NCBI RefSeq assembly: GCF_000150275.1
Contig: NW_002060946.1
Location: 3,119,454 to 3,183,453 of the forward strand
From: Trichoplax adhaerens
Lineage: Eukaryota; Animalia; Placozoa
Direction of reading: 5' to 3'
Length of the DNA: 64,000 bases
Shown: piece by piece, positions 1,742-58,100 of the stretch
Numbering within the stretch: position 1 is the first letter of the stretch
Layout: every line of letters begins with the position of its first letter
Position numbers and translations under genes: made by a program
Notes under the pieces: generated by a model
The model's database searches: none
What the model saw: only the letters and a program-made list of their open reading frames with translations
What the model was told of the DNA's origin: nothing

Positions 1742-1861
1742 GTCTACGACCACATCACGCTGAACACACCCGTTCTCGTCTGATCACGGAAGTTAAGCGG
1801 CGTCGAGCAGGGTTAGTACTTAGATGGGTGACCGCTTGGGAATACCCTGTGCCGTAGACTT
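1742..1861 (+). rRNA. 5S ribosomal RNA gene
   Basis: 120-nt GTCTACGACCACATCACGCTG...GCCGTAGACTT with complementary ends (helix I), box A (AGTTAAGCGGCGTCG), box C (AGATGGGTGACCGCTTGGGAA) and downstream T-runs. Confidence 0.96.
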
Positions 1862-2449: not shown

Positions 2450-5400
2450 ATGGAAGATCGAGAGACTTCATCTAAAGAATCTGATAGGTATTCACCGTTG
2501 AACAGATGGATAGTCTTTAGAATAAAAAATCTTTATTAGAAGTCAAGACACTTCTCGTCTTTAGTCAATTAGATCCTCAAATACCAGCTCAGCGGTCTTC
2601 ATCTGACCAACCAAATAGGTATTTCAATCGATCAACTTGACATTAACTTAAAATAGACATAATAAAAAATGGTTACATTTTTCACCTTATAAGCACAAGA
2701 CGTAATCTCAATTGATTAAATGGAAATTATTTAAAAATATAACAGCTAGATAAAAGTTAATTACAGTACGAGTACACTTTCGTTGACATTGAATTAGACT
2801 GTCAACTGCCAGATCAACGTTATTCATCCAGTTCATTTTATTCTTTTGCAGGTATTCTCAATCGATCAACTGGATATTAGTTTAGAACGCAAACGTTTGA
2901 TTAACATTACATACACTTTCATATATAGTGAATATTATCAAACGGTATCAAATCAACAGTCTGCAGCTGCTAGTGATCATATAGGTAAGTACACTAATGG
3001 TACCGAAATAAATTTCGTTTGTTAATTAATAATTATAACTATTACATCAATTGCCATAGAGGTTAGCGATACGAATATATCGTTGTTTAACTTATCGTAA
3101 ATGGATGTTGGAATCGTGTAACTGATAATAACCTGCATTCAAGCCTCAGTATGTTCTAGTAAATCAGGCCGCTATTTGAAAATAGTTACAAATTATCCAT
3201 TGATAATTGTAATTATGGAAATTATGATAACTATGTTTTCTCTTACCTGAATAAACTACTGTCAGTGCTATCTTAAGTTATACATCAATTACATGCATAC
3301 CCGGATGTATAGTATGAATATTAAACTAGAGAAATGTGCTTGGACACAAGTGATGATAGCTACAGTTAGAATTTTTATAATTGCACTTTAAGAGGAAAAT
3401 GATCCTTACTATATTTATAATTTTTAAGAACTAATCAACTTCACTTTCTTCTAACTACATAAAGTACGATGCTTACTAAACACTAGTTTAATTCCGTATA
3501 AAGTCTACAAATCGATCGAACAATACCATGTAAGGTCGATACTTTATTTCTGTCTTTCAGTTACTTACTGTCCCTACGTAGTATCAATTTAAATCATTGT
3601 CAGTATGACGAGAGCTTACATTATAAAGTAAATAGAATGACCAAAAGGAAGACAAGGTCGTTATTGTTATAAATTCAAGCTATGATAACTATGATGGGAC
3701 AGGCGGAGAGATCAGATTACTTTCTGATATTCATAAAAATAATGCTTGAGTGACTTTGATTGATTTTTACTAATTCGAAATTACATTTCTACATTATGAT
3801 AAAGCCCATTACTTGTTTTATTACCATGAGAATGACAGTCTACTTGCCGATGAAGTAGCAGGTATCTGCAACAGAAAAGGCTTGCAAATACGAAAACCTG
3901 ATAGGGATGGTCAATACGGTCGCAGTATACTTCAATCTTCGACAGAGCTATTTCTAAGCTCGAAACGTATCGTTTTATTCCTGACAGAAGATCTGCTAGA
4001 TAAAGCAGGTCAATGGGTACCATTGTTTGCAGATCCTCACATTCAAAGTCTATTTAATGCAGGTACCGTAAAGGAGTTTCATGTTTTCTTCTAGAAGAGT
4101 ACCTGAAAAAAACTGGTAGCGAAATATTGATTCTCATATCTGTTACAGGATTAAATACAGTATTAAGTATGCCTAGCTAAAGTAATAATTGCCTTAGTGT
4201 CATATTCACGAATGAATAAATCTTACATCTTTGCGACTAAACAATAACAGAATGTATTGCTATAGTACCTATTTTTTTGTGTATAACATCTAATAAATCT
4301 AGGCATGATTTATCAATTATCAATTTAGTTGTCTAACTTTAAAAATCACCATAGATCTAAGACGTTACTGCTGTCTAAGGATGTACGAGTATAGCATTGT
4401 TGCTGTCTATAAATATGCCCTTAGATGTTTCTAGAGATATTTTTAGTAGATTTTAAGAACAAGGTAAGTATACATAAGATAAGAACATGCGAATATCCTA
4501 TTATCTCGAAGGCAACTATGTCACATCCCGAGTAATATTCATTCTGATACAGTGGCGATGTTCTGTCAAAATACATTACCTCGATAACAAACCGAACTCG
4601 CATATTTAGTAAATTTTAATATATTAAAAGTGTTTCTTATGAGGGTAATTACTGGTAGGAGCAGGCTAAGATTGTCGTTACCTTAAAGCAGTTGTATTTT
4701 AACAGTTAACTGAGATGATATCTGTAAAATAGTACCTCTTAAGCACATAAAATTCATGTGCAGCATAAAGGTCTTAATGGGATATACTGTATATGTACGG
4801 TAGAAATAACTGATCTCTTACATTAACAATATAAATGTACATCTTGGTGTTAGTATGGGTAGGTTAGTACTCTAATTCAAGGCATTTTACAACAAATCGA
4901 TGATAATGTAGGCGAGATATTTATATAGTAAATGCGTATGTCTGTTAAAATACGTAATTGCGAGTTATTATTTTTCACATTTTTGGCGTGATCCAAATTT
5001 ATTATTTATTATAGATTGGAACCCTTTATTAATGATATGGTATGCGAGTAGAGCATCGATTAAAAAAAGAGTTCCGTTTCTGTGTGGCCGAACACCAATA
5101 CACGGTCATCGAGGGCCCAGTCATATTGCAGATTGCTTGATCCGAGAAGCAGGTTCGTAAATTTCTGTACAACGTAGTGCGTAAGCAACTGCTGTTACCC
5201 TCATCACAGATTCAGAAATGCTGTCCTAGCCATATGCGGCTATTCGTCTATCATCTGCATTCGGGTCATCGATATAAAGGTTAAAATATCTTACATTTTT
5301 CATTGATCCTTGCGTTCGAATTGAAACCTCTTTCCTTTCGTAAGAAATGGATTGTGATGGCAACGCATCGGCGATAGTAGGATTAACAGGTATGAGTCTC

Positions 5401-5831
5401 ATCAAATCAGTAGCGTTTCAAAATTCATTATCAATACTCGTTAGTACAATTGGTGCAGTAACAGAAATTTCACTCAATATACGAGATCAAATTTTGTTTG
5501 TAACTTATGATCTGCTATTGCTATCTTAAAGCTCTTCTATCTATCTAAGATGATAACGTTAGGTAATTGTATACCGCTTATTATTTGTTGAAAGAGCCAA
5601 GATTACTAGGTGAACATACGGATTCACAAGGCATTACAACTAGGTCAATATCCCAAACTAAGGATAGTAGCCAAAGAACACAAAACCAGCCGGACGTTCA
5701 TACAGATAATTCTGATGTTGACGATGTAATTAAATACATGCAGTATGCATATGACCGTAATACAACTGTTTCATTTACATGCTAACTGCCAGTATTTTTA
5801 TTGTTAGTTGGATGAGCACACATCACCATAA
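2450..5831 (+). CDS. TIR-like domain protein 1 (multi-exon; model 2450-2487, 2565-2618, 2929-2984, 3805-4062, 5015-5152, 5345-5389, 5595-5725, 5808-5831)
   Basis: All listed exons have AG/GT boundaries and compatible phases. Core: AHYLFYYHENDSLLADEVAGICNRKGLQI...ELFLSSKRIVLFLTEDLLDKAGQWVPLFADPH...DWNPLLMIWYASRASIKKRVPFLCGRTPIHGHRGPSHIADCLIRE, a beta/alpha pattern typical of TIR domains. Exon sizes and phases match paralog 2 (56-nt and 138-nt exons). Terminal exons are less certain. Confidence 0.72.
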
Positions 5832-6544
5832 ACTGGAGCCCCTTAAGGTAAAGTATTAAATCTGCATGTTCGGTATAGTCAAATTAAGGGTAATAAAGTA
5901 AGCATTTTCTACCATTTATAATGTTATTGTTTATTAATATATAGTAGTATTGTAATTACCAATGCATCTTTTAAAAGGTAATACCATTTTACTGAAATAA
6001 CTGCTAACAGCCAACAACTCCGAAAGTATTGTTTGCCTAATAATAATATACGTGTAGCAACACCGAGGCATAATCGTTATAATAAAGGTATTCCCCAATC
6101 TCTATAGAAGCTTTGTTACGTAAATATATGCTTTCGCCTTCTTGGACCTTGAGGTGTTACCATAACCTTTACTATAGTATACCTATACGGAATGATTTCA
6201 GCTAATTGCAATAGTTATATACTCCGAAATTATGATTATAATATGCGGTAAAAAATTGTGTTATAATATCATAGACTTTGTTCTTTCTTGTACTGATTAT
6301 GTTAAGAATAAAGACTAAGAATGTTTATTTAGATTTACTTCATTACTTAACATCTGCATAAATTTTCCTGTGTCACGACTATGCTGTCTGTATTAACTTA
6401 GTTATAGTGGTATTTATAATAATGCTGTAAAAGTATTGTAGCAATTTCTTCAATTTTAGGATGTCGTTATAAAATAAAATAATTGTTGTAAAGATGTTGA
6501 AAATCGCAGTTAACATCAATATATACTGCTGCTATCTAGTCGAT

Positions 6545-7000
6545 TTTTTTGCTGATATGTTATCAACAATCCATATCAGGAAGATCGCCGAAGAATACTG
6601 TAATTACTTTTGCAATGCGTTATGATCAATTAAATAATAGACCATCTTGTTTGCATAGTAAAGGATAATATAGCTTTTCATTTGTGTTTTCTGCAGATAC
6701 TTGATCTCATCATGAACAGATTAATAAATAAATACAGTACTGTATACACATTACAGTATGTCTTTTAATAGTACTGTTCATAAATACAGGGTTGTATGTA
6801 GTCTTCCCTAACCCTTTTTAGAGCAAAATAAAACATTTCCAGTCGTCTATGACCATATCATGCTGAATATACCCGTTCTCATCCGATGATGGAAGTAAAG
6901 CGGCATCGAGCAGAGTTAGTAATTTAGATAGGTGAGCGCTTAGGAATACCCTTTGTCGCAGACTTCAAAATATTTTTGTGATCTATTTCTTTTTCACCGC
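6545..7000 (+). repeat. Second copy of a duplicated block (first copy ~1470-1897): intron end + terminal exon + 5S + T-rich flank
   Basis: Collinear similarity, including an identical 26-mer ctgcagatacttgatctcatcatgaa (1613-1638 and 6691-6716) and similar flanks on both sides of the 5S. Confidence 0.85.
6845..6965 (+). pseudogene. Degenerate 5S rRNA copy
   Basis: Aligns end to end with 1742-1861 with about 19 substitutions and 1 insertion (hand count). Changes fall in box A and box C (AGATAGGTGAGCGC), so it is probably non-functional. Confidence 0.85.
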
Positions 7001-7169
7001 GATCGCTCCTAGCTATAGTATATTTTGTTGAGGGACAACAATGAGGGATATTAAAGATGATAGGACCTTCTGGAATCGATCGAATTCCAGAATTAGCAAC
7101 TGTTATAAAATGTCATGTATCTTGCCATATTAAGAAATCCTTATGCTTCGTTGATAAGGTTACTGCCGA

Positions 7170-7910
7170 TAGCACTAGTAAAAGTTTCTACTTGTAGTGG
7201 TTGTTTATGGGGAAATTTGTGTTATTTATTTTTATTTTATTTGAAATGAAATATTTTCTAAGATATATTATTCGATGCATGCTTTTCTGCTGAAGGGTCA
7301 GCAAAATCGAACTCGTATATGGTCCATATTAAAAGATATCGCCAATATTTTAGATAGTTTGCACCTGATGGTACCATTTTGAAGTCAAGTGCCCTATGGC
7401 TGAGATTCATGACAGTGGCACCAGCTCATACGGTGCCAGGACAAAATGTATACTGCCCAGCCAAAATCAGGCTGGGGTATTAATTTTGTTATAATTCTTC
7501 ACACTGACTACTGGCAGCCGCCCCCTATTGATACAGTATCGATAAATTTCAGTAAAAAATAATATCATGGGCAGTTTGCAAAATGACCGACTTCGCATAC
7601 GGTCACGTTCATAAACATTATGTACGATACCTACTTAAATGCTATGCTGAGAAATTGTTATGCTTGGTTGGTTACTAGTGATGCTATCGATAAAAGTTTA
7701 CAGATGGTGTTTATGGAGAAATTTGTTTATGGGGAAATTTGGTGGGGACACTTGTGGGGAAATTGAATTATTTTTAAATTTAATATTTTAAATATTTTCT
7801 TAAACACTACTGGAATCTGGTAATACTTTCCGATGTAAGAATGTTTGATATCAACCTTGTGCGTAGCCCAGTTAAAATACACGGCTGATAATTTTTAAGA
7901 AAGTTAGTAT
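7170..7910. repeat. Degenerate ~500-bp-period direct repeat with GGGGAAATTT motifs; possible transposon relic
   Basis: taaaagttt...gtttatggggaaattt...aaatattttct occurs at ~7178-7260 and ~7691-7800, with internal reiteration of tgggga(aattt) in the second copy. Confidence 0.45.
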
Positions 7911-9082
7911 ATATTGAATAACGAGTTTTTTTTATAATTAAATTTATCGTAGGTACCTGTAATGCGGCAGTCTGTATCTTATCCTACTCTAACTCGCCTA
8001 CTCACGATTAAGTTAGAACTAAACTTAAGATAAAAGTATACTATATTACAATTTATTAAAAATTGAAGGTCCTTGTAAACTAGTTTCTAATAGTAAAACA
8101 GTAAAACGTATGATACTAGTTACAGATTATTCTACTTAAGTTTAGACAATGCCACGAGAAAGAACAGAAGGTCAAAAGCGATCAAGTAAGAATGAAGTAT
8201 TTTTGATTAGAAAGTTTAAAATTAGTAAGACGATAATATGATAGAAAAATATCTGTAGTATATATGTAATGTTTTCTTTTAATGAAGTTGTCCTACTGTA
8301 TTACTTCTCATATTTTAGTAAAATTAATTCTTCGGGTTCCTAATAAATCAGACACTAGCTAGATTAATAAGCTTTATTACAATAAAAACCAAATGCAGCT
8401 CTATTTATAACAAACTATATACTCGACAGTCGACACATACATTCATAAGCCGTAGCTCATGACCCATTACGTAGCGGTAGAAGTATTATCATTAAGCTTC
8501 CGAAAGTACAGGTATTAAATTGTCATATCTTGCCTGGGCATGAGCATAATTCCACTTTTAATAATCAATATCACTTTCATCATATGAAGGCAAATCAACA
8601 CGTTCTACTGTAATGGAGACCAGTGAGCTAAAGTAAAGTACTAGCTGTTTAAGTTTCGTAATTTGCTTCGAAAAAGCGAATCACCTAGATGTTTCTGTAG
8701 TTAGCTGGTTATATAATATAATTATAAAGAGTAAGGTATAAGAGCTGCGTGGATTTCTTCTGCTTCAAACTGGAACGATTTGGGTAAAATTTTTTGCCGG
8801 GAAATTTTACTTGGGCACAGTTTTCTTCGATGGAATTTATGGGAGAGAATTCTTCATAGTACCACTGTTATAGCTTCAATATTTACGGTACTTTGTGAGA
8901 AAATGATACGAGTAGAGAACTATAACAAAATTGTCTTTTATCCAACTATTCATACAGCTAATTTGTTAATTATTGCATAAATTATGACTGCTAAAATTCA
9001 TTCTGTCCATAAAATGCTATTAATGCTGTCTGAATTTACATGGCAAACTAAGGATATGGCGTTGAGAAAACATATTACATAT

Positions 9083-11105
9083 ACTTTAGCTGATGCTAAG
9101 GTATCGAAATTTTAAATAATACGAATTTACGTGCAAGATGCAGATGTTGTAAGACTGCTACCTTACTATTTGATAGGCTCCATCATTTAGCAGTGTAGTT
9201 TCATACATGGTCTGCTAATGCAAGCGAATAATACAGCATTTTACTATATATTAGCTAATTACTCTTCCAAATGTGCACAGCTTTAAATTTAATCCGTCGT
9301 TAAATAGAGCAAGCGCCCTCTTTTGATGATTTAATGAATTTTCAACACTCTTTAGGAATCGCTCGGTTAGGTATTGTAATATTTTACTTTGTAAATAGAA
9401 TCTTATGAGATGATATTCAAAGTAAAACTGCCGTTAGTAATATCATCTCTTATCCAACTGCAATTAGAACTAATTTTGCTAATCATTGTGTAAATTTTAG
9501 CTAGCTACGCTTCCATCTGCATAAATACCCTTAGTGCTCTAAGTTGTATGGTATCATATCAACATTGTGTTGAAAACGTGAACATGAACTTTAGCTGATG
9601 CTATGTACATTGAACTTTGAATAATACGAATATACGCATAAGAAACTGATGCTGTAAGGCTAGGACTGAATATTAGTATCCATAATAGTGTAGACTTACA
9701 CATAAACTACTGTCACAAGTAAAAATACTGCATTTTGCTGTATATTTATCCAGCTATTTTTCTAAAATGTGCATAACTTCAAATTTGATTTCCTCTCATT
9801 CAATGATATCTTGTATATTGATCTAGCGCCATCATATGAATCGCAAAATCCATCGGAAGATCAAAACTTCTCTCGTAATGAAATTGAAAAGTAATCTCAA
9901 TCATCAATTGAACATTTGTTAGAATACAAGAGCTGGATCTAAATTAGTTACACTTTTCATTCATAGTAAACTAGATCAGTTGCAATCACCTCAACGGTCT
10001 ACAAATGCAGCTAACGAAAAATGTAAGTACCGAAATTAGTTCATTTTATACACATGATTACTCATTAAGTCAGTGAAATCGATATGTTGGACAGTTACGG
10101 TATCAATATTTTACTTTGCGATAGAATGATAAAGATTCAGATTTGAAGTGAAAGAGTCTTTAGCTATATCACTTTAACTATACTTACCGCCAATCTATTA
10201 ATAATTTGATAGTTCTTGCGTAGTTGTGATCTAATTTATAGTATATAGTATGAATATTGCATTAAATGATATAAATGAACTACAGCTTGGGCTATATGTA
10301 TTTAGAATTCGAGTAATACAAAGGCATGCGTAAAAATATAAGGTTTGCAAAATTACAACTATATGCTAGTGTTCATAATACCGTAGCCTTACACATAATT
10401 TGTTATCACAAGGGAATAGTACAGTATTATGTTATGTTTTTAGCCAGCTGTTCTTTCGCTATTTATTTTCCGCTTTTAAATTGAATTTTCATATACTAAT
10501 TACAGCTGACGCACATCGTGCAATGCCCAAACAAAATTTATTAGAAGATGAAACGTCTCCATACCGGTATTGCGAATTTAATAAGCTCTATCGATCAATT
10601 TGACATTAATTTAGAATACAAAATATTGATTTAAACTGATTACACTTTCATTTATAGTGAATCAGATATGCCACAATCATACCAAGAGTCTGCAATTAAT
10701 AGTAATGGATCGTGTAAGTCCTAAAATAAATTCATTTTTATATTTCTTAATCAATCGGAACAGCAATGCTCGTTAGGTTTGCTGTATATAGTAGTCATAA
10801 ATAAATTTTAAATGCATAAATATACATAACTGATTTGGTAGAGCTTCAATACTGAATGATGCGAGTAGGGATTTAAAGTTAGCAAAACTGTTTTTAATAA
10901 TATCAGCCTCTTCTTATCTAGCTGATATTAAATATGCGAAGCTTTGAAAAATGCGGATATACGTATAAGATGCAGATGCTGTAAGACTTCTGCAGTACTA
11001 TATGATAACCTCTATAAAAGTGTAACATTACACATAATCTGCTGTTACAAATGAATAATATATTATTTTACTAATACTCGTGTAGTTAATTAGCTAACTG
11101 CTTCT
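9083..11105 (+). repeat. Three copies of a ~200-bp intronic segment (~9083-9296, ~9588-9793, ~10918-11105)
   Basis: Shared tagctgat...aatacgaat.tacg...aagatgcagatg.tgtaagact...agtgta...tacacat...aataat...attttact pattern. Confidence 0.8.
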
Positions 11106-13989
11106 CCTAGCTAGCGCTGAATACATACTTTTTGCCTCTACCCGTAATTGTGCTTTTATATTTTTGCAATTTTTACTATCTAAAGTACAAACATGATCTA
11201 TTTGGCGACTGCAAGCATGCATACATTATACTACAGTTCTTTCTACCAGTTTAACTACGAGTATCGTAGTTATTCTGGACCGGTAAGTACCCGGAGTAGT
11301 TATTAGGTAGGCGTACTAATGCTTATAAGCACATGTACTGTATGCCATATAACCAGATAATTTGGACATTTACTAATGATATAATATCATACAGAATGAC
11401 ATGTAGCATCTAATCCTATGGTGCACTGTGAGTAGATTATAAAAGGAGTTATTGGTTGGTGCCACATGGAATTGTAATTACAAAGGCAGTAAGATGTACG
11501 CTAGTGTTTGGAGTAATAAAGATCTCTACTTCTATGATAAAAAGGATATTTGTATTTTCCTGTGAGGACCCTCAACCTCAGTTGATATCCAGTGATCGTA
11601 ACATATTTAATGGCAGCAATCTCGAACCTTCAATACCAACGAAATATATGCAATTTTGTTTATTTATTTTATCTTTACTTTCTCTAAACTGATTTATGAT
11701 AAAAAGAGTCTTTGTATTTTCCTGTGAGGACACTAACCTCGCTCAATATCCAGTCATTGTATCATTTACAATTTATGTTTCAAATTATAGCTCCATACTA
11801 CGACTTTTTACTTATTTACAATAACGATGATAAAGAAATTGCTGATCCAATAGTATCCAAGCTCAAGAAGTTGAAAATAAAATGTGTTGGAGATGGTGGC
11901 CCAGGTCAAAGCCTGTTGATAGATTCTGGCAAAGATTTTATAAAAGCCAAAAGGATCGTTTTTTTTTTAACCAAATCTCTGCTAGCAAAAAATCAATGGG
12001 TAAAGTTACTGGCAGATCCACATGCTTATAAGTTGTTATTCACAGGTTAAGTAATAATTGTCTTACTGAATTATAGGTGTACTGGTATATTTATAACATA
12101 GTAATAGCTATGACATCTTCGTAATTATACATAAATATAACACAATGCAAATCAATTGCTGAAGGAAATTTTAATAGAAAACCGGCACCGTATTGAGATA
12201 ATAATAGCAGAAATACGTATTATGCAGTGACTTCTGAGCTCGAGGATACTCAGAAGTTCCTATCCCATTTATGCTGTCTTGTTCGAGCACGAGCACATGA
12301 AGTCTATTGAAAAATGCCTCTAGGGTCATCTACAAGTACACTATAAACAGCGATGATGCAGGCTATTATATTTACTTATCATTTTTATGTTGTGTCATAA
12401 GATAATAGTATATTACATCTATGACGGTGTTAAGAAATTATGTATTAATTACAAAACACTTGTTACAGTTGATTACTTAAATTAATCTTTCTTGTTGCGA
12501 TATCAGCTTTGAAATTTCGTATATATTCATTACGCATGAAATGAGTCGCAATCAGTAAATTTAGTAAAACACAATATTTTTTTAATTTACCGCCTTAAGA
12601 TTACTGTCATATTAGAGCAGTTATAATTGTACACTTTGTTTCAAGAACATTTTTTTAAGTAGCGCAAGGATACGGTCTAGATCTCAAAGAAACATCTGCA
12701 TAGAACTAGCCAATTTATACGTTAATTAAATCATCCGCGTATAATATAGAATACCGTAGTTCGCTATAAATTGATATGACATTTCTTGCTCTTAATGTAA
12801 TAGGTATAGGATCATAGCGTGACTCAAAACATCTTTATAACAAAATGATATTATGCAAAAAATGAGATACCGGGTATATTTATATATAAAATATTAAATT
12901 CCATATTTTTCTTAGCCAGAACATATTTTCATTATAGAGGGGGACCCTTTAATTGCGATATGGTATGTCGGAATCGATGAGATTCTGAGACGGATTCCTT
13001 TTCTAGCAGGTAGAGTTGGAATTTCCGGTCATCAAGGGGCCAACTATGTTGCAGAAAAGCTGATTAAGATATCAAGTTCGTAGATATTCAAACGCGATTG
13101 TTATTGCAATAATTGGGATTGAAAAATGATGTCATAGACGTAATCAATCATTTATATGGCTAATAACTCCTTTATTATAGGAGACAACAATGTGTATGAT
13201 GTAGATTTAGAAGCCATGAAATACTTAGGTATGTGTATTATTGATAAGAAATATCGTATTTTACTTGCTATCAGCAGTTAAAGTATAAGTGCCTATCCTT
13301 TTTTCATAAATGATTATGGTTGTGATGATGATACTTTATCTTCACTTACTACTCATTAATTTGTTGCATTCTTAAAGCTAATAAAGGAATTTAGTATAGT
13401 ATATGTGTCAGTATAAGGCTAAGGAAAGAGCTACTACGGCAGTATATTATAATGCAAACTATTCCGATTCGGAACTCTTAAGTTGATTTATAGCTTTGCT
13501 AATACGAAAATTTTATAATAATTATAATCATAGTATTATACGAGAAGACTTGCTATAATTACTGAAGTTATCGTAACTGGGACAGATTTGATAGATGATT
13601 TTTCATTATAACTTGAGTAGTGACTTACTTATTCAACTTCTATTAAAAGTGGTTTTGTTAGCTAGATTTTGTTACTTTTTATTTGTTGAAGAGAGCGAAG
13701 CAAAGATTATATATGAGGATATCTACGGGATTTTAAGCCCTTCAATTTCAAGTCCTCCAGTATCTTCGATCACTATCAATCAGTCGCCAGAATTTCATAC
13801 TGATGGCAATAGCCAAACGGAGGGAAATGTACCGGACGTTGATCAAGATAGTAATTTTTGTGGCGAAATGGTAATTTATATAGCAGTATTCGTAAGATTG
13901 CAGCTACTTCATTTATTAACACATTAATTGTTAGTACATTTGTTTAAATTATTATGCCAATCTGTTATGATGAATAGACCGTGTTATAG
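9308..13989 (+). CDS. TIR-like domain protein 2 (multi-exon, 5' end unresolved; model 9308-9370, 9827-9890, 9967-10022, 10506-10566, 10658-10713, 11791-12045, 12938-13075, 13181-13228, 13692-13870, 13978-13989)
   Basis: Phase-compatible GT-AG exons give an open frame. Core: PYYDFLLIYNNDDKEIADPIVSKLKKLKIKC (TIR box1-like)...KAKRIVFFLTKSLLAKNQWVKLLADPH...EGDPLIAIWYVGIDEILRRIPFLAGRVGISGHQGANYVAEKLIKIS. Clear paralogy to gene 1. Start codon and last exon are uncertain. Confidence 0.75.
11533..11772 (+). repeat. Direct repeat of ~75 bp, period 162
   Basis: tatgataaaaag...tttgtattttcctgtgaggac...aacctc...atatccagt at 11533 and 11695. Confidence 0.85.
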
Positions 13990-15271
13990 TCACAACTGAA
14001 GACATTCATGGCTCGTTGGTAAAGCTCGAGGTAGAAAATAGGAATAAACGATTGCTTAATCCAAAACCTTATACATGTATATTTAATGATTTACTTCAAT
14101 GCGCAGAAGTATTTTTTAAGAGCGTTATAATTACAGGAATGATTTCCACTTATCCATACATTTAATAATAATGACCATTTATATAATTATGAACTCAACG
14201 TTATATGAAATTATTGTGTTAGAAAATGCTAGTGTATGTCTGTAGTGATGTAAGCTATATTTGATAGCATTGATAGCTGACTGGCTATATGTATATGTAT
14301 AGTCACTGATAAGACTCTTTCCGTTTTTTTAAAGATATTTGATAAATATCCAACTAATGATGCTTTCTTCCTCAATAAATTATAATGATAAAACGTGCCA
14401 TGGTAAATACAGCAAGAGAAAACCTGAATTTATGAACTTATCGCTATAGATATAACGTTGATATGTACTGTAATCAAGTACACCCGCAATTATATGAAAG
14501 CGGCCAATTTTAATCATTGAAAAGAATGAAAAGGTTCAAAAGAAATTTCTCGTGCGATTCCCTGTATATAATTCCTTATAATTGTGCTAGTTGAAGATAT
14601 GGAAGTATGGACCTTCAACGCAATAGTTAGTGAAGAATTAGCTCCTAAAAAGGTGTTATAATTTCATAGGAGTTTCGCTAGTTGTAGTTCGTCGAGATCG
14701 ACTTTCATGAAGACTCAGCACCAGTCTAGGTACCAAAGACTCCTTAATTCTACCTTCAATTGTTAAACTCGAAACTCAAATTGTGAACCTTCTTAGAAGC
14801 TTTAAACTTCCTGTTACAAATCTAAGTTTATAACGTGGAAAATTTAACTATTAAGGAAACTAAACATTGCGAGCCTACTGTCAATTTTATCTTCCCTGAT
14901 ATCCACCTACATAAAACTGAACCCAAACTTTATTGATTCTACATAAATAGTAATCATCGATTGATGATAATATTATACAACTATGCAATTATTTATTAAA
15001 AATATGTAAATTTCATAGGTAATTAATATTGACACATTCCTAGATAGATTATCCTATGGAAACTATGTTACAACACCTATGCACAAGTTACTCCTTCGCG
15101 TAATTTATAAAATATACAGCCTACAAGACATACGATTATCAAAGTAGTAAAATATTTAATGGAACACGTAAAGGTATCATAATCTTACTACTAAATTGGA
15201 TGCTACGTTACGTAATAACGTACGTAAATGGATATAGATTTATATGCCTCCCTTCAAAACTCCTGGCTTTG

Positions 15272-21456: not shown

Positions 21457-22452
21457 ATGGAAAATAACACTATTGTAACTCTTAGCAAACACATAGATCG
21501 CGACATAACACGAAATCTTTACATGTTCATTTCTGTTATTGCTATCATTGGCAATGGATTTGTGTGCAGTTTATTTATTGGTAAACAGTCCCTTTTGCAG
21601 CATGCCACAAATCGATTTATACTCTTATTAGCAATAGTGGACAGTCTAACAGCTATCATGGTTATTATATCACCCACAAGCCAACTTCTTGGTAATCCTT
21701 ATCCCTATCCTGGACGTGGACTGGGACAGCAATTCTTTTGCATCATCATCTATTCTGAATATTTCTTATGGGCATTTGGCTATATTTCCATATATACTAT
21801 TGCTATGCTAAGTCTAGAGCGTTTATGCCTGGTTATTCTGCCTATCTTTCACAAAAAATTTTTCACCCCTTTCTACGTTAACGCTTTGATCGTTCTTTTA
21901 ATTTTCATTGGATTAATCTTATCTGCGCCTAATCTATTTCAAATTAGAATTACTAATGATGTACGGCGTCCTTGTAGATTTATATCTTTGCGTGTTAATC
22001 AAGTAGTTAAATCTCTTATCATTATTCTCTCTTTTATCTTGCAATTTTTTATTCCAGAACTAATCACCTTTGCATGTTACGTGATCATTATTTGCCGTAT
22101 GAGAAAAATTGGGCTGACTCCTAACGAAGCCACGATTGATATACGATCTCAACGGAATCGTCGTTCACGACGACAAGTAACATTAATGATTTTTGTAGCA
22201 TCCATTGCACTTTTTATTTGCTGGTTACCTAACAGTATCTACTTTACTTTGATTCAATTTAGTCTGGTAGCATCTTTAGATAATTTTCATTTTATAACTA
22301 AGACATTAGTTATTGCAAACTCTACTATTAATCCAATCATCTACGTAACTGTTAATATATATTACAGGAAATTATTTGTCAAGACACTTCGAAGGTTATT
22401 GAGCTTTCGTCGGAAACGGCATAAAATTAAAATCAATGTCATTAGAAACTGA
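21457..22452 (+). CDS. Class A (rhodopsin-like) orphan GPCR, single coding exon, subgroup A
   Basis: Seven hydrophobic segments; GN (TM1), LAIVD (TM2), SLERL (DRY equivalent), ECL2 Cys, CWLP (TM6), NPIIY (TM7); N-terminal N-glycosylation sequon NNT. Confidence 0.95.
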   Translation: MENNTIVTLSKHIDRDITRNLYMFISVIAIIGNGFVCSLFIGKQSLLQHATNRFILLLAIVDSLTAIMVIISPTSQLLGNPYPYPGRGLGQQFFCIIIYSEYFLWAFGYISIYTIAMLSLERLCLVILPIFHKKFFTPFYVNALIVLLIFIGLILSAPNLFQIRITNDVRRPCRFISLRVNQVVKSLIIILSFILQFFIPELITFACYVIIICRMRKIGLTPNEATIDIRSQRNRRSRRQVTLMIFVASIALFICWLPNSIYFTLIQFSLVASLDNFHFITKTLVIANSTINPIIYVTVNIYYRKLFVKTLRRLLSFRRKRHKIKINVIRN

Positions 22453-31000: not shown

Positions 31001-32141
31001 TACACATCAAATAAGCAAGTTATTAAGCTAAGATATTTGTATTGAATTCTATACGCTGAGGACAAAGTCAGATCTGATGGTTTTAATGATTGTAATAGAT
31101 TGTATTAGTTTAGTATATAGCATCTAGTGATTTCAAGTGATTTCTGTATTTCACTAGTCATGAATGACATATCATCACATAAAAGCCTCATAACATAAAA
31201 CAAAGTCCTAATTGTATATTAAAATATTAACCTTAGAATATGAGCACAATAATATACCACTTATAAAGTAGACGTTTTGCGTAGATTGTCGGAAGTTTGT
31301 TGCCAAGGCGATACTAAGTTTATGTATTACTTCCTGGTTTTAGGACAAAATAAAGATATTAGGGTTTGAAGTTACATCAAAAGCATATTTTCTATTAATA
31401 CTTACTAATCATTACATGATACTATTTTATTTATATAGGTTTATTATATCTAAGCATAACAAATAAAGTTGATAGATAATTACTACTGGTACACTATAAG
31501 CTAGCATTTAACTATTCTTATACGCCTTAATTTAATTGTCATAGCCCAACTTCTGATAAATGTGATGTAATCTCAAGTAATTTCACAAATTAAAACAATA
31601 TTATTTGTATGATATATAATTATACATTGCTTCCTAAGCCAGCATATTCTTAATTTAGATTCACTTAATGTATAAAGAAGTTAATTGTCAGTAATACTGT
31701 GGGCGGTGGTAAGCCTTAATTAATTAAACAGAATTGCATTTCAAAACTGATCTACCTTGGTTTAATTTTTTAAATGCAGTGTCGAGAGTTTTTAATTTCT
31801 GCCAAAAGAGCGCTTCTAAACCACTTTGAATGCCTATGCCACAAGTATAAGTTAAAATTTTAGATATTGGGTGCCAATGCTTTGAAGATTATGGCTAATT
31901 TCATTTTAGACGAGTATGTAAGAGATAATATTTCATAAAATGATTACGAATAAAGCAAGCAAGAGTATATCATTAAATAGCAATGTTTAGCATAGTATTT
32001 AGATTGCGTAGTCTTTAATATGTTATACGTTTAGTAAAATAAAATTTTACTTGCAAAATGATTAATTCATGTTGATACACCAATTGTCGGCCATTGAAAA
32101 ATCCCATAGATTGTAAAAATTTAATCATTAATTCTATTTTC

Positions 32142-33518
32142 ATGCATTTAGGAATCGTATTAAATTATTGTCTTTATTTTCGCTTTAGCAGCAATTTTAC
32201 GAGTATATTGAACGTAATCAATTCTAGTAATCCCGTTCTAGATACTTCTATACTCGGGCAAGGCTTAACAGATCCATTTAATGGTACTTATTGTCATCGA
32301 TTTAATAATACAGAAAATAATGACTACGAAAATAGTAGCTTTATTATGACGATACGAGTTCCACGACTTATGATGGCTACTTTCGGGTTAATATGTAATC
32401 CTATGGTACTCTTGCTTTTCCTTGTTAAACCATCACTACTCCACGTAGCATCGTATCGATTGATTTTCTTCTTAATAATAATCGATGTGTTTTTTAGTGT
32501 AATCTGCCTAGTAGTATCAACTACTTACGAATATTTTATTATTCAGTCTTCTCTTTATCAACGTTTACCAACTATTCGTCGTATACTTTGCATTTTAATT
32601 AGCTCAGATTTTTTCATACGAGGATTAAGATGCATCTCAGCATATATCATTTCCATACTCAATATTGAACGAATGTATAAAATAGTTTGGCCATTAGATT
32701 ACCATCAAATATTTATTCCTCGCTATATCAATTTGATGGTTTTACTTGCATTTATGGTGGGATTTTTATTAACAATTGCTAATTGCTTTCTTATCGAATA
32801 CATCCCTCAACATCAATTTCCTTGCCAATGGATAGTACTGTCAAATAATCACTTCTGGGATAAAGTTATATTCTCAAGCCTACTTTTCATACAGCTTGTT
32901 CTACCTATTTTTGTAATCAGTATTTGCTATGGAGTGATAATAATTCAAATTCAAGGATTTTGTCCGGATTTCAGTACAAATAAACCTTCCAATCAGATTG
33001 GTACCTCCTGCAATATTAATATTCGAAGATTCTGCAATACGCAAGCTTCACGTATCGGCAAGTATCCATATGTAGATCATTTAGAACGTGTAGCAAATAT
33101 TCCGCCATTATTGAAAGCGGTAACCGATGATGCGAATTATGGCTTGTTAATACAAAACCTATCTCATTTAAGTGATCAAGAAAGTAGCCTCGACAGAACT
33201 CGTGACTATCGAAGAAGCAGTCTACCAGATAAAAGTTACACAAATACACGAAATTTAACGCTTATGATCTTATCAACGACGATAGTATTCATGGCTTGTT
33301 GGATACCAACAGAAATAGTTCATACGCTAATTCAATTTCGTGTGCTCCCAATAGCTTGTCGATTTTTATTCATAGCTAAACTTCTCATGGTATTAATTGC
33401 TGCCAGTAACCCAATTACTTATTTCATAGTTAATAAAGCTTGCAGGATATTATTGTGGAAAATTCTAAAATTTTCGTACTTATTATTAATGTGTGTAATA
33501 TTGGAGTGTTTCTCTTGA
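32142..33518 (+). CDS. Class A orphan GPCR with expanded third intracellular loop, subgroup A
   Basis: 7TM with NIERM, CWIP, NPITY and several N-terminal sequons. The ORF track starts at a TTG; the first ATG is 32142. The real start may be a later ATG or an upstream exon using the acceptor ttttcgctttag near 32188. Confidence 0.88.
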   Translation: MHLGIVLNYCLYFRFSSNFTSILNVINSSNPVLDTSILGQGLTDPFNGTYCHRFNNTENNDYENSSFIMTIRVPRLMMATFGLICNPMVLLLFLVKPSLLHVASYRLIFFLIIIDVFFSVICLVVSTTYEYFIIQSSLYQRLPTIRRILCILISSDFFIRGLRCISAYIISILNIERMYKIVWPLDYHQIFIPRYINLMVLLAFMVGFLLTIANCFLIEYIPQHQFPCQWIVLSNNHFWDKVIFSSLLFIQLVLPIFVISICYGVIIIQIQGFCPDFSTNKPSNQIGTSCNINIRRFCNTQASRIGKYPYVDHLERVANIPPLLKAVTDDANYGLLIQNLSHLSDQESSLDRTRDYRRSSLPDKSYTNTRNLTLMILSTTIVFMACWIPTEIVHTLIQFRVLPIACRFLFIAKLLMVLIAASNPITYFIVNKACRILLWKILKFSYLLLMCVILECFS

Positions 33519-47052: not shown

Positions 47053-48078
47053 ATGAACGCAACCGTATCCATGTTTAATACTTCCACACCTACCCCAGGC
47101 TGGCAACCTGGCCCTACTATCGATCCACTCTTAATTAAAGTATTGCATGGGATATTTGCTACATTATCCATACTTGGCAATACATTTGTAATTGCAATAT
47201 TTCTATCTAGTAAAAGTTTATACCAGCAAGCATCCAGTAAATTTGTCTTGTCATTGGCCTTCGTGGATGCATTAACAGGCGTAATTGTCTTTATTTCGCC
47301 ACGAAGTATTTTAGATGGTGTTTTCCAACTTACGCCTGGCACAACTACTGATGTCCTATGTAGTATTCTGTATTCCGATTACTTCTTTTACTCTTTGGGT
47401 ATTATATCGGTTTATCTTATTACTGGCCTCAACATTGAGCGTTGCTTCATGGCTATAAAACCTTTTCGGTACAAAGTTGTCTTTAAACCGCGCTTGACTA
47501 ATTTTATGATTGCAGTAGCCTTTATCCTTGGGTTTGTAGTCAATGCTCCGAATTTATACCAAAGTCACTACGATCCTCGTGGATTTTGTAATTGGCGGGA
47601 CTTGCCTGGGGGTATTGCATTTAATCGTGCTATCTACTTTATTCTCTTCATGATGAAATTTGTTCTACCACTGGGAATATCATTCATTTGTTACGGTTTA
47701 ATTGTCAGAGCTTTCAAAATCTCTCATCAAAAAATTGTCGCAAACGAAAATTCTCAAGTACATGGTGATCAAAGTGCATTTATGATGCGCCAAGTGACTA
47801 TCATGGCCTTTATTACTACCTTGGTTTACTTTATATGTTGGGCACCTAATCAGATATACTTTACTCTAATTAATTTTAAAGTTTTACAGCTGCAACATTT
47901 TCCTCGCTTCTTTTTCGTTATCTTAATCATGATAAATTCAGTCGTCAATCCTATAATTTATATGACCGTAAATTATCGCTACCAACAACAGTGTCGCCAT
48001 CTTTTCTCAAGATTACGCTCAACGTTTCCTAATTCAACTGCTAACAGCTCTTCGGTATTAATTTCGATGCGCAGCTAA
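47053..48078 (+). CDS. Class A orphan GPCR, single coding exon, subgroup B
   Basis: 7TM; LGN, LAFVD, NIERC, CWAP, NPIIY; N-terminal sequons NAT and NTS. Confidence 0.95.
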   Translation: MNATVSMFNTSTPTPGWQPGPTIDPLLIKVLHGIFATLSILGNTFVIAIFLSSKSLYQQASSKFVLSLAFVDALTGVIVFISPRSILDGVFQLTPGTTTDVLCSILYSDYFFYSLGIISVYLITGLNIERCFMAIKPFRYKVVFKPRLTNFMIAVAFILGFVVNAPNLYQSHYDPRGFCNWRDLPGGIAFNRAIYFILFMMKFVLPLGISFICYGLIVRAFKISHQKIVANENSQVHGDQSAFMMRQVTIMAFITTLVYFICWAPNQIYFTLINFKVLQLQHFPRFFFVILIMINSVVNPIIYMTVNYRYQQQCRHLFSRLRSTFPNSTANSSSVLISMRS

Positions 48079-53955: not shown

Positions 53956-55107
53956 TCAATTTACCGATTTTACATTATTTATCGGAGAAGTTTGATTGTA
54001 AATAGCATTGATAGATCGAGTAGAATGTCTAGTTATGTAAAATAATCGATTAAAGTTACTAAAACTATAAAACTGCTGGACTTGACTAGCAGAATTGGCT
54101 CGCACTAAAATTAGATCATGACGGTAACAATCCCTTAGTCGTCTTAATGTACTATAACATTGCCGCCGATAAAAGGAATTAATTACAAGATATATGATAG
54201 GGTTAAAACATGCATTAATCATGACTAATAAAATATTGATGAAAGCAAAGATTGAATTATAATGCGTAATCATGAAGTTGAATAAGGTGAAATAAATCTG
54301 ACTGGGTAGCCAACAAACAAAATATACTACAGCTGAAGTAAATGCTACAAATGTTAATTGACGCATCATACGACGATTTCTTTGCTTAACTATAGCACTT
54401 GAACTACTAATTTTATTAGCTGATTTATGAAAATTTATTAATAAAAATATATAACATGTGAAAGTTATAGCCATTGGAAGAATTAATTTTAAAATTAGCT
54501 GAATGACATAAATAAATTGATTTAATTCTTGACTACAGGGCAATGGTCGCCAGCTGCACTGTACTGTACAATTGAAGTGACAGTAGTTATGATAGATATC
54601 AGGCGAGTTGATTAACATTGCAAAGGGAAAAACAACAGAAATGGATATTGATGTGAAGCGTGATGTGAATATGCTTTTATATTTGATTGGTCTAGCAACC
54701 ATACACCATCGCTCAATACTTAATAATGTAGTGATATAAGTTGAGATGGTCCCAAATGACCAAAAGAAATAGTAGGATTTAAATAATCCACAGTATAGAG
54801 TTGTAATCCAATCACTTTCAATTGAAATAGCACCGTCTATAACAACATCTGGACCAACTAGTATGACAACTCCAATCAAGCCATCAGAAATAGCCAAAGA
54901 TAGAATAAATTTACTGGAAATGAGCCGAGATAATGCTTTATTCACAATAAACACCGAACAAATTAATAAGTTGCCAAATATAGCTATGCTACCAAGTGCG
55001 ATCAGTATTACCTTTACAAAAATGGGATTTATAGCGATTGTCAAGGATTGAAAATAATGGTAATGTTTAGAAGGGTTGTCCTCCGTCATAGTATGATTTG
55101 AAGCCAT
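53956..55107 (-). CDS. Class A orphan GPCR, single coding exon, subgroup B
   Basis: 7TM; FGN, LAISD, SIERW, CWLP, NPIIY. Start moved to the first ATG (MASNHT, aaaATGg context) at 55107. Confidence 0.94.
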   Translation of the reverse strand: MASNHTMTEDNPSKHYHYFQSLTIAINPIFVKVILIALGSIAIFGNLLICSVFIVNKALSRLISSKFILSLAISDGLIGVVILVGPDVVIDGAISIESDWITTLYCGLFKSYYFFWSFGTISTYITTLLSIERWCMVARPIKYKSIFTSRFTSISISVVFPFAMLINSPDIYHNYCHFNCTVQCSWRPLPCSQELNQFIYVIQLILKLILPMAITFTCYIFLLINFHKSANKISSSSAIVKQRNRRMMRQLTFVAFTSAVVYFVCWLPSQIYFTLFNFMITHYNSIFAFINILLVMINACFNPIIYLVINSFYRRQCYSTLRRLRDCYRHDLILVRANSASQVQQFYSFSNFNRLFYITRHSTRSINAIYNQTSPINNVKSVN

Positions 55108-58100
55108 TTTAATAAAATATACTTGATATCTACTTTCAATCGTAGCTGAAGAAAGGATCAAAGGCGACTATGGTGTGGAAATTCATCCAAATATTAATAG
55201 GGTAACAGGTAGAAATAAATCTAAGCAAAGGTGTTATCGAGCTTTTAATTTATATCCGCATAAGTTTACTAATTAGAATATAAATTACCAATGGGCAGAA
55301 CTAACAGCAGTAAACCTTTGGACCAGCCTTAAATGGTACACCAAAGCCTACAATTCGAATCGTCTTCAAGTTGTAAAGAATGATCGGCCGGGCAATGATG
55401 TGGCTTAATGGTGCTGTTTAAAAAATAGATGATAAGGTGACGTTTATATCACTTATTGTGAAAGTGGGAGAAAATTTGATATTTTCGTTGAATGCTGCTA
55501 AAGTACGAGTGATTTTCTTGATAAGGCCGACCATAAAATGTAACTTTAATTTCGCTTCGTAGAGTACTGACACGAGAGTTGTTCCAATTTGTAGTTGATG
55601 TAATTGCGAATGAAAAGAATTGATAGGAGGCGGAAAATTCGTCGCAAGCTGAATACAAGAAATTCTGATCAGGAAATACCCGCTATATACATATATCGTC
55701 AGTTTTATATTTTATTAAAGTGCTGTAGCATAACACTTTTAAATAAGGATATTTTCGAAACTTTAGAAGAACAAGTACGGATCAATTTATTAATTTATTC
55801 CATTAGCTACAACTCAATCAGGGCGATTACATTGTGACCTTAAATGATTTTCCTTTTATACCGTTGATTGTGTTTCTAAAAATCAACATCTGGCCCTCAA
55901 ATAATTATCATCTCATGAATTATAGATAACTTTGTCCACAATGAAACATATTGATTACATTATCCATTTTGGTACGCTCTAATGGAAAAAAATCCTAATG
56001 CTTTATTTTCAGCCAGCACTCTAGCTAATCCTTTCAACAAACTCTTTATTATGTCAATAGAAATGGAATAAAATCTACTTAATTAGATTTGATAAGCTAT
56101 TAAAATAGTTTGATTTACATCTTTTACCCTAAATACAGTTTAATTGATATATCTTCACTGAATTTTTGCCTCCTTTTCATAACAATTTCTAACCAAATGA
56201 TTAGTGTGCATGCATAAAATAACGCCATGAATGAAGTCTTATTGTCTATCTTTAGATTTTAATGGAATACTGTCTTTCAATAATTATTGATGGTGGAAAA
56301 AGAGAGCGAATAACTACGCTATGTTTGTTGACTATGACATTAAGCTTTGTTGACATATTGTTAGGACAGCTTTAATTATGGGTTATAATAGTTATCTGTT
56401 ATTGCCGATATCTTGAAACGAAGTTAATGTAAGTCTAGCTCATCAGTAGATGTAACTGTAAAATTTTATTGTCTTCATTAATTGTCTCACTGTACTTTTC
56501 AATGGCATTCCAGAATTTTCTTGATCAATGCATTAAATAAAATTCCCACCAGATAGGCAATCAGTATACATACAGTTTGATCTGAATACTATTAAAATAT
56601 AAAATATTTCTACTTATTAGTAATTAGAGAACTACGGTACATTACTGTCAAGTAAAAATTAGTTTACTGATCGTATTTACTGGAATGATTAATATCCTTC
56701 TAGTCGGCAGACAGTAATTCATAATAATATCAGTACTATTAAGGTAGAACGAACGCGGTAACTTTAAAGAAGTCTACTCATAAACAGTAATATGCTGTTT
56801 ATTCTATTTCTTTGGCTAGTACAAATGAATCTAAACTAATTTTTATCCATTAAATTAATAAATGTTACAATTGTAACTATCGCTATTGTCATCCTACTAA
56901 TCAATTTTTAATTCCATTACAGTATTTAAAACAATTTTTCACAGAATCATTTTATTCCTTCAAGTACCCAATCGCTCATATTTAGACCTTTCTAAAGCTT
57001 TAGAACTGTACACATAGCTACAAAGTATTGCATGCATTTAGGAAGCCCGTGTAACTTTACAGTATTTAAAAAAATAATAATAACCGCATGTTGACTTGAT
57101 GTAATGGTAAGCCCAAGCAGGTTGCAACTTCGATATTAAAGTATATCTCGATCTATATAACTATGAAATACCATTAAATGGAGTATCATTCGTGAAGTGA
57201 TTGTGTCATTTTTGAATATTTTAGGCCCGCTTTTAAATATTTAGCGCAGCAGAAATTAGTTGAGATAAATACAATTAACACCCACTTCCTTCCATGCACG
57301 GAGCCTAAATGGCTCTGTCTATTCGTTCTGAGAATAATGTTCAACCATGATTTCAATAAAAGAAATCCTTATTTTGACTTTTGCTACTGTTATAAATTAA
57401 TAATGAAGACTACGCATATATCGTATTTGGAAATAATTTGTTCTAGGATGTATTTTTAAAAACTTTTTTCTACTCCAATTTATTTCATACACCCGATTTC
57501 CTAGGTCATGACTTTATTACCGACACCACAATTTCTCTTTTACTAAAAAGAGTGCTACATCTTGATCATTTTAGGTAAGCTATAATTATCTTTAATAATT
57601 TAAGGTAGTTTTTATCAAACGGATTCAAACGTGAATATCTAATATGAAGTAAAGAGAATTTTCAAATAAGAAATGACTCCTGGATTTCCGTCTATAGGCT
57701 TGAAAAGGTACACAGTGCTTTATTTATTTAAACCGTAATGAAGCATCGCCATATACATCTCTAGAATTCTAGTTTATGATATATTTTATTAATTCTTATG
57801 ATGAATAAAACAATTTAGTGCGAATTATTTTTATTTTATTTTACGATTACAACTACTAAATCTGAGATTCAAATTTTATAGTGTTCTCAAGTGCTCAAGG
57901 ATAATATAATATGAATGTTATGGTGAATGAAACTATTTAATTCCATTTTGATTGCATTTTACAATTTTAAAAAGCTTATTGCTCGAATGTTAAATACTAT
58001 TGAGGGGTCTGGATTTCCCCCTGTATTGTATACAATTAATCGCAAAATGCAATAAAAATTCGGATTAAATGATTTCATGTAACACAGCATTCATTTTTAT

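Follow-up and report, generated by a model that had tools for sequence, protein, structure and literature searches.

A probable family of expressed, divergent TIR-only proteins in the placozoan Trichoplax adhaerens

The window analysed here is a stretch of 64,000 nucleotides (nt) of the Trichoplax adhaerens genome (contig NW_002060946.1, positions 3,119,454 to 3,183,453 of the forward strand), consisting of AT-rich eukaryotic DNA with about 31% GC and lying on scaffold C1411 of the 105.6-Mb assembly. It contains two neighbouring genes on the plus strand, gene A (2450-5831) and gene B (10523-13989), which, together with a third copy elsewhere on the scaffold, very probably constitute an expressed family of proteins with the TIR fold. 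The original prediction, made from the letters of the window, described two tandem spliced genes with matching exon sizes and phases and a two-exon domain of about 130 amino acids, and both genes were found at these places.

The domain unit is split over an exon of 258 nt in gene A or 255 nt in gene B, followed by a 138-nt exon, with an intron of about 0.9 kb between them in both genes (Table 1). All four domain exons have AG/GT borders and identical phases, with one base carried in and one carried out. At the protein level, the first domain exons of A and B are 43% identical (BLASTP E 2e-16) and the second ones 45% identical (E 1e-15), values that exclude a chance likeness. The small flanking exons pair up as well, with sizes of 56/56, 45/48 and 131/179 nt in A and B and the same phases. 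At the DNA level the exon borders alone still align (repeats D7, D9 and D11), which indicates that the duplication is old. The tail exons of the two genes, otherwise of low complexity, share the motif P-(D/E)-(V/F)-H-T-D-x-N-S followed by D-V-D, which may be a docking site.

Table 1. Features of the TIR gene locus and related elements (window coordinates unless a locus is named)
Feature	Position	Strand	Evidence
Gene A first coding exon (MEDRETSSKESD)	2450..2487	+	GT donor, phase; in models P0018 and P0002
Gene A optional 54-nt exon	2565..2618	+	AG/GT, in frame; in Trichoplax sp. H2 model P0002 only, missing from P0018
Gene A 56-nt exon, pairs with gene B 10658-10713	2929..2984	+	AG/GT, size, phase; DNA repeat D7 spans acceptor
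Gene A TIR exon 1 (from strand A through helix C; has RIVLFLT, QWVPLFADPH)	3805..4062	+	Identity to gene B exon; aligns with certified TIR domains
Gene A TIR exon 2 (from strand D through helix E)	5015..5152	+	Identity to gene B exon; in P0018, skipped in P0002
Gene A 45-nt exon, pairs with RNA-confirmed gene B 13181-13228	5345..5389	+	AG/GT, phase; in P0002
Gene A acidic, Ser/Thr-rich tail exon	5595..5725	+	AG/GT, phase; in P0018 and P0002
Gene A predicted last coding exon (LDEHTSP, stop)	5808..5831	+	AG acceptor, phase 0; by analogy with gene B
Gene B 5' exon, end 10022, untranslated or N-terminal coding	9924..10022	+	Contig ends upstream of 10506 match 9993-10022 exactly; coding in P0017
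Gene B exon with ATG at 10523	10506..10566	+	Joint 10566/10658 in X4, X5, X11
Gene B 56-nt exon	10658..10713	+	Joints 10566/10658, 10713/11791
Gene B TIR exon 1	11791..12045	+	RNA joints; Pfam TIR_2 E 0.0024, 18.8 bits (cut-off 28)
Gene B TIR exon 2	12938..13075	+	Joint 12045/12938 in three runs from three studies; joint 13075/13181
Gene B 48-nt exon	13181..13228	+	RNA joints
Gene B acidic, Ser-rich tail exon	13692..13870	+	Joints 13228/13692, 13870/13978
Gene B last exon (TVL, stop 13987-13989, 3' untranslated region, poly(A) site)	13978..14397	+	Joint 13870/13978; poly(A) loose end 14397 in X4
5S ribosomal RNA (rRNA) gene, 590 nt upstream of gene A	1742..1860	+	Rfam RF00001, 107.1 bits
Degenerate 5S rRNA copy between genes A and B	6845..6964	+	Rfam RF00001, 60.9 bits (vs about 107)
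Two 5S rRNA genes upstream of copy C	L003 3077-3195; G000:C1411:1964515-1964633	both -	
Intronless rhodopsin-family receptor gene	21457-22452	+	Pfam 7tm_1
Intronless rhodopsin-family receptor gene	32094-33518	+	Pfam 7tm_1
Intronless rhodopsin-family receptor gene	47053-48078	+	Pfam 7tm_1
Intronless rhodopsin-family receptor gene	53956-55161	-	Pfam 7tm_1

A genome-wide search with each exon revealed three copies in total. The third one (copy C, locus L003) lies on the same scaffold, 1.16 Mb away, and has kept the 138-nt second exon. In A, B and C every exon has an open frame, canonical splice sites and phases that match. A sensitive hidden Markov model search that covered the entire window, as well as 10-kb stretches around other 5S rRNA genes, gave no further members, and in protein database searches the named relatives were restricted to Trichoplax. 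Four short fragments from ENA and Logan contigs (P0004, P0005, P0008 and P0009) are 29-35% identical to the family. Three of them (P0004, P0005 and P0009) extend a few residues past the end of the Trichoplax first exon, as expected from read-through of an intron at the same position, so the family is present in at least one other intron-bearing genome. A scan of metagenomes from the Joint Genome Institute (JGI) with the family alignment found no relatives.

Expression was analysed by aligning contigs of four public runs (X1, X4, X5 and X11, the last being a declared RNA sequencing library) to positions 10200-14400 of the window only. Contigs of X4, X5 and X11, which come from three studies, contain the GT..AG joints 10566/10658, 10713/11791, 12045/12938, 13075/13181, 13228/13692 and 13870/13978. 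The junction between the two domain exons that the original prediction had proposed is thereby joined in RNA in all three runs, and its end point for gene B coincides with the stop after TVL defined by the joints. Run X1 gave an even, DNA-like coverage of the same region with zero joints. The gene B contigs carry a poly(A) tail after 14397 and reach upstream of 10506 into the exon ending at 10022. Gene B is expressed, spliced and polyadenylated. Its coding exons, counted from the ATG at 10523, total 732 nt, corresponding to 243 codons and a stop; the public model P0017 starts translation upstream of this ATG.

A single X5 contig suggests a minor alternative acceptor after the first TIR exon of gene B (12043-12802, skipping 758 instead of 892 nt), a weak case with 26 letters on the shorter side. 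The RNA contigs also differ from the window within this exon, at 11899 (G to A in X4, X5 and X11) and at 11921 (A to G in X11). The protein of Trichoplax sp. H2 has two differences from the window in the same exon, Gly to Asp and Gly to Ser, which the changes at 11899 and 11921 would fit. Both changes occur in X11, a run filed under a second organism label, which may therefore derive from the sister lineage.

All three genes have public T. adhaerens models, namely TRIADDRAFT_55501 for gene A (P0018), TRIADDRAFT_55502 for gene B (P0017) and TRIADDRAFT_55344 for the third copy, each bearing the UniRef label 'TIR domain-containing protein'. The family had originally been described as hidden, which does not stand: with the genes and the TIR label already public the finding is an ordinary one, and A, B and C are neither unannotated genes nor a new kind of protein. 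The orthologues in Trichoplax sp. H2, TrispH2_004427 (A) and TrispH2_004428 (B), are both labelled 'hypothetical protein', and a literature search on the five locus tags (three TRIADDRAFT, two TrispH2) found them named in no paper of the library searched.

The public models disagree with the gene structures described above in several places. For gene A they read through an intron instead of using the predicted last exon at 5808-5831. TRIADDRAFT_55501 uses the junction 4062/5015, and TrispH2_004427 (P0002) skips the 138-nt exon 5015-5152 in frame. Judged by the RNA joints, TRIADDRAFT_55502 has its last intron read through at the C-terminus, while in TrispH2_004428 a false donor/acceptor pair deletes helix C (VKLLADPH...) and another intron is read through. 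The read-through stretches (13595-13927 and 13871-13927) are hydrophobic: VVLLARFCYFLFV (VVLLARF...) in TrispH2_004428 (P0003), and VIYIAVFVRLQLLHLLTH (VIYIAVF...) at the end of TRIADDRAFT_55502. Such stretches could suggest that the gene B protein ends in a transmembrane segment or tail anchor, a reading that was rejected because the joints 13228/13692 and 13870/13978 identify them as intron read-through; the true C-terminus is ...CGEM-TVL and contains no transmembrane tail.

The exon skipping in the H2 model of gene A raises the question of whether some of the copies are duplicates in decay, with gene A in particular losing its second domain exon and the family consisting partly of pseudogenes. 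The degenerate state of the 5S rRNA copy beside gene B (60.9 bits) would be in keeping with this, and the RNA evidence covers gene B, within the stretch 10200-14400. However, the exons of all three copies are intact as described above, gene A exon 5015-5152 keeps 14 of the 14 residues that are invariant among the three copies, and T. adhaerens and sp. H2 have the same protein sequence for gene A exon 1, whereas the flanks differ. Given also the clear expression and splicing of gene B, we regard decay as very improbable.

To characterise the domain, exons were searched singly, and whole-domain work was performed on the public proteins P0001 (copy C), P0017 (gene B) and P0018 (gene A), which hold the joined domain. 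The sole recurring Pfam match was TIR_2, found in four family members with E-values of 0.0012-0.021 and scores of 15.7-19.8 bits against a gathering cut-off of 28. A profile was then built from the three first exons and run against 1.84 billion representative proteins. Beyond the family itself and the four fragments, its matches were mainly TIR proteins with E-values from 7e-7 to 5e-4, including a TIR-STING protein from an annelid, proteins with four and with two TIR domains, and a TIR protein from a fish. The three retrieved proteins that were scanned (P0006, P0010 and P0012) all exceed the Pfam TIR and TIR_2 cut-offs. Comparison of the family profile with PDB sequences gave 35 weak matches (best E 0.036), almost wholly TIR chains, among them MyD88, TLR1/2/6, TRAM, MAL and Hydra TRR-2, in register from strand A to strand C; a phmmer search of PDB sequences with P0001 returned nothing useful. 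When the family was compared by hhalign with the retrieved TIR domains, the probability was 97% across 72 columns, from strand A to helix C. The feature neighbours in the ESM Atlas are TIR_2 clusters.

Individual TIR motifs are preserved to different degrees. Strand A (box 1, typically hydrophobic-D-x-F-x-S-Y) aligns with that of TIR domains (YDFLLIY, HYLFYYH, DYYFCFD). In the BB loop (box 2, typically RDxxPG) the glycine is invariant, and proline occurs in gene B only (GDGGPGQS vs RDGQYGRS and NDSRRGAS). The box 3 FW motif near helix E is lacking from the second exons; its absence is common in TIR_2-type domains. No SEFIR match was obtained with Pfam in family members, and SEFIR structures reached Z scores of 9.6-10.4 in the VIA structure search, below those of TIR domains. 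As had been anticipated from the letters of the window, Pfam detected no other domain in the full models, and the flanks of the gene B domain are disordered (AlphaFold predicted local distance difference test, pLDDT, below 50). In the absence of a second domain the proteins are classed as TIR-only; their tails are short, acidic and rich in Ser/Thr.

Structure prediction led to the same assignment. The AlphaFold2 model of copy C (P0001), made from an alignment of family members only, consists of five beta-alpha units with a pLDDT of 69.5 and a predicted template modelling (TM) score of 0.69. In a Foldseek comparison with the PDB, a TIR domain occupied every listed rank down to 46, with bacterial TIRs leading (E about 5e-6, TM score 0.65-0.76) and followed by plant, MAL, TLR1, TRIF, SARM1 and MyD88 TIRs. 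The VIA search, which is independent of Foldseek, was likewise led by PdTIR (Z 13.4, 131 residues aligned at a root-mean-square deviation of 3.0) and AbTir (Z 13.1), and other TIRs came next. The gene B model (P0017) contains a domain of the same five-unit beta-alpha topology with a pLDDT of 50-80, and its top Foldseek matches are TIR domains. The TIR fold proposed for the family was thus recovered first by Foldseek for both copy C and gene B, and by VIA for copy C. Taken together, profile, profile-profile and structure evidence supports the core of the original prediction, a stand-alone divergent TIR domain. By profile homology and predicted fold the domain is a divergent TIR domain, one that fails the curated Pfam threshold.

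Among known systems, the bacterial-type TIR_2 domains (PdTIR 3h16, AbTir 8g83/7uwg, BtTir 7uxr and TcpB/BtpA 4c7m) share with the family a size of about 135 amino acids and the five beta-alpha units. They are closest in shape, with the scores given above, and provide the only Pfam model that matches the family at all. However, the sequence identity is just 11-23%, and the members of the Trichoplax family are intron-bearing animal genes with no sign of recent bacterial transfer. The adaptors MAL/TIRAP and TRAM/TICAM2 resemble the family in that one TIR domain is flanked by short unstructured sequence and neither a receptor nor a death domain is present, and the TIRs of MAL, TRAM and MyD88 are among its sequence and fold matches. 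The family differs from MAL and TRAM in that it has neither a lipid-binding nor a myristoylation motif and keeps the BB-loop proline in gene B only, and it is not orthologous to them.

The resemblance to the cryptic TIR of BCAP/BANK1 (5for), suggested in the original prediction, proved to be more distant. That domain is also a divergent TIR missed by sequence models, but for the gene B model it appears at rank 13 (E 8.8e-4, target-normalised TM score 0.54), behind bacterial TIRs, and it is not among the copy C matches listed; moreover, the family lacks the DBB, ankyrin and coiled-coil parts of these proteins, as judged from Pfam and the disordered flanks. The best named non-placozoan profile match (E 6.9e-7) is the TIR domain of the invertebrate TIR-STING protein of Owenia fusiformis (P0006), and oyster TIR-STING (6wt7) is a fold match with Z 12.4, whereas A, B and C have no STING domain.

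NAD-cleaving TIRs (SARM1, bacterial and plant TIRs) depend on a catalytic glutamate at the start of helix C, which sits in a W-x-x-x-E motif or, in the retrieved TIR domains, in the variants L-L-E, W-A-E and M-Y-E. In alignments made with both MAFFT and hhalign, the corresponding column of the family is occupied by Lys in B, Pro in A and His in C, and an alternative W-to-W register places Leu or Phe there, so that neither register of the sequence alignment contains a glutamate. The absence of this residue favours a non-enzymatic role, and it argues against a NAD-cleaving effector, one half of the 'adaptor or effector' function originally suggested for a rapidly diverging innate-immune family. 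The segment W-V-x-L-x-A-D-P-H is invariant in all three copies and specific to the family, and it is located where helix C and the catalytic glutamate sit in other TIRs. This position, and the fact that the top structural matches (AbTir, BtTir, PdTIR and TcpB) are NAD-consuming bacterial TIRs, could be taken to mean that A, B and C are enzymatic effectors of the bacterial and SARM1 type after all, either NADases or producers of signalling nucleotides, which use a non-canonical acid such as the Asp of ADPH. Yet this Asp lies at least two residues away from the glutamate column and on a different helix face, and the fragments from outside Trichoplax vary the segment (ANPH, IDPH, LEPL), which makes an enzymatic function improbable.

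Several points weigh against the interpretation as TIR proteins with a non-enzymatic role. No Pfam TIR model reaches the gathering score for any family member scanned, and gene A alone gives no Pfam TIR match. The hhalign targets had been pre-selected with the same family profile, so that the E-value of that comparison is not independent. The AlphaFold confidence is moderate and falls to its lowest at the helix C region with WVxLxADPH; the invariant Asp of ADPH could conceivably act as the acid residue, and the H2 model of gene A, as noted, does without the second domain exon. The VIA scores of generic flavodoxin-like and receiver domains lie just 1-3 Z units below those of the TIRs. The domain might accordingly have a flavodoxin-like fold that merely resembles TIR and has a function unrelated to TIR signalling or immunity, an explanation that could also accommodate the subthreshold Pfam matches, the receiver, B12-binding and decarboxylase wing domains found at Z 10-12, and the PurE-type folds that appear from rank 19 for gene B. 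It is considered unlikely, because sequence searches that do not depend on the fold (profile, PDB, hhalign and ESM Atlas) point to TIR families and because TIR domains top both structure searches.

A further feature of the family is its association with 5S rRNA genes. Each member is preceded, at a distance of 0.6-3 kb, by a 5S rRNA gene of the same orientation. Scoring of 47 of 1488 candidates gave nine 5S genes in the genome, a lower bound, and four of these nine are the ones next to the family. The upstream flanks of the two 5S genes in the window are themselves repeated (D5 and D10). On a more far-reaching reading, which we consider improbable, a placozoan-restricted family of catalytically inactive TIR-only proteins would have duplicated together with a 5S gene on every occasion, the RNA polymerase III gene being part of the duplication or regulation of the unit and WVxLxADPH representing a new TIR interface instead of a dead active site.

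Other elements of the window include dispersed repeats of 70-97 nt with 65-74% identity at 9087-9183, 9592-9661 and 10919-11015, within introns of gene B and upstream of it, and a second set in the same surroundings at 9665-9735, 10358-10428 and 10997-11067. A small mobile element has probably left these short repeats behind. Between 21 and 55 kb, downstream of the TIR genes, the window contains a cluster of at least four intronless genes for G-protein-coupled receptors of the rhodopsin family (Pfam 7tm_1, E 9e-15 to 2.6e-30).

Genomic analysis of placozoans has reported 16 TIR proteins, MyD88-like TIR-CARD proteins and a SEFIR receptor candidate, with no true Toll-like receptor, and some placozoan TIR-only proteins may serve as alternative adaptors (Kamm et al. 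2019, PMC6321704). In our proposal, A, B and C would encode small cytosolic TIR-only proteins, in which a compact domain of about 130 amino acids lies between short disordered flanks that are acidic and rich in Ser/Thr. The domain keeps the TIR core, comprising strand A, the BB-loop glycine, strand C with RIVxFLT, and strand D. As to binding partners, immune role and enzyme inactivity, we infer as the most likely mechanism a non-enzymatic one, in which the proteins would associate through homotypic TIR-TIR contacts with other placozoan TIR or SEFIR proteins and act as an adaptor, scaffold or decoy in signalling of the innate-immune type. We give an even chance to a function as a non-catalytic adaptor or regulator. 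The best explanation as a whole, that of expressed placozoan TIR-only proteins with a non-enzymatic role, is held with moderate confidence.

This study adds to the public record a gene model for TRIADDRAFT_55502 that is backed by RNA and has its C-terminus corrected, evidence of mis-splicing inside the domain in both Trichoplax sp. H2 models, independent fold-level support for the automatic TIR label, and the finding that the catalytic glutamate is missing. The family bears on how TIR proteins signal in placozoans, which have no true Toll-like receptors (PMC6321704), and its three genes are candidates for encoding adaptors or regulators of a minimal TIR type.

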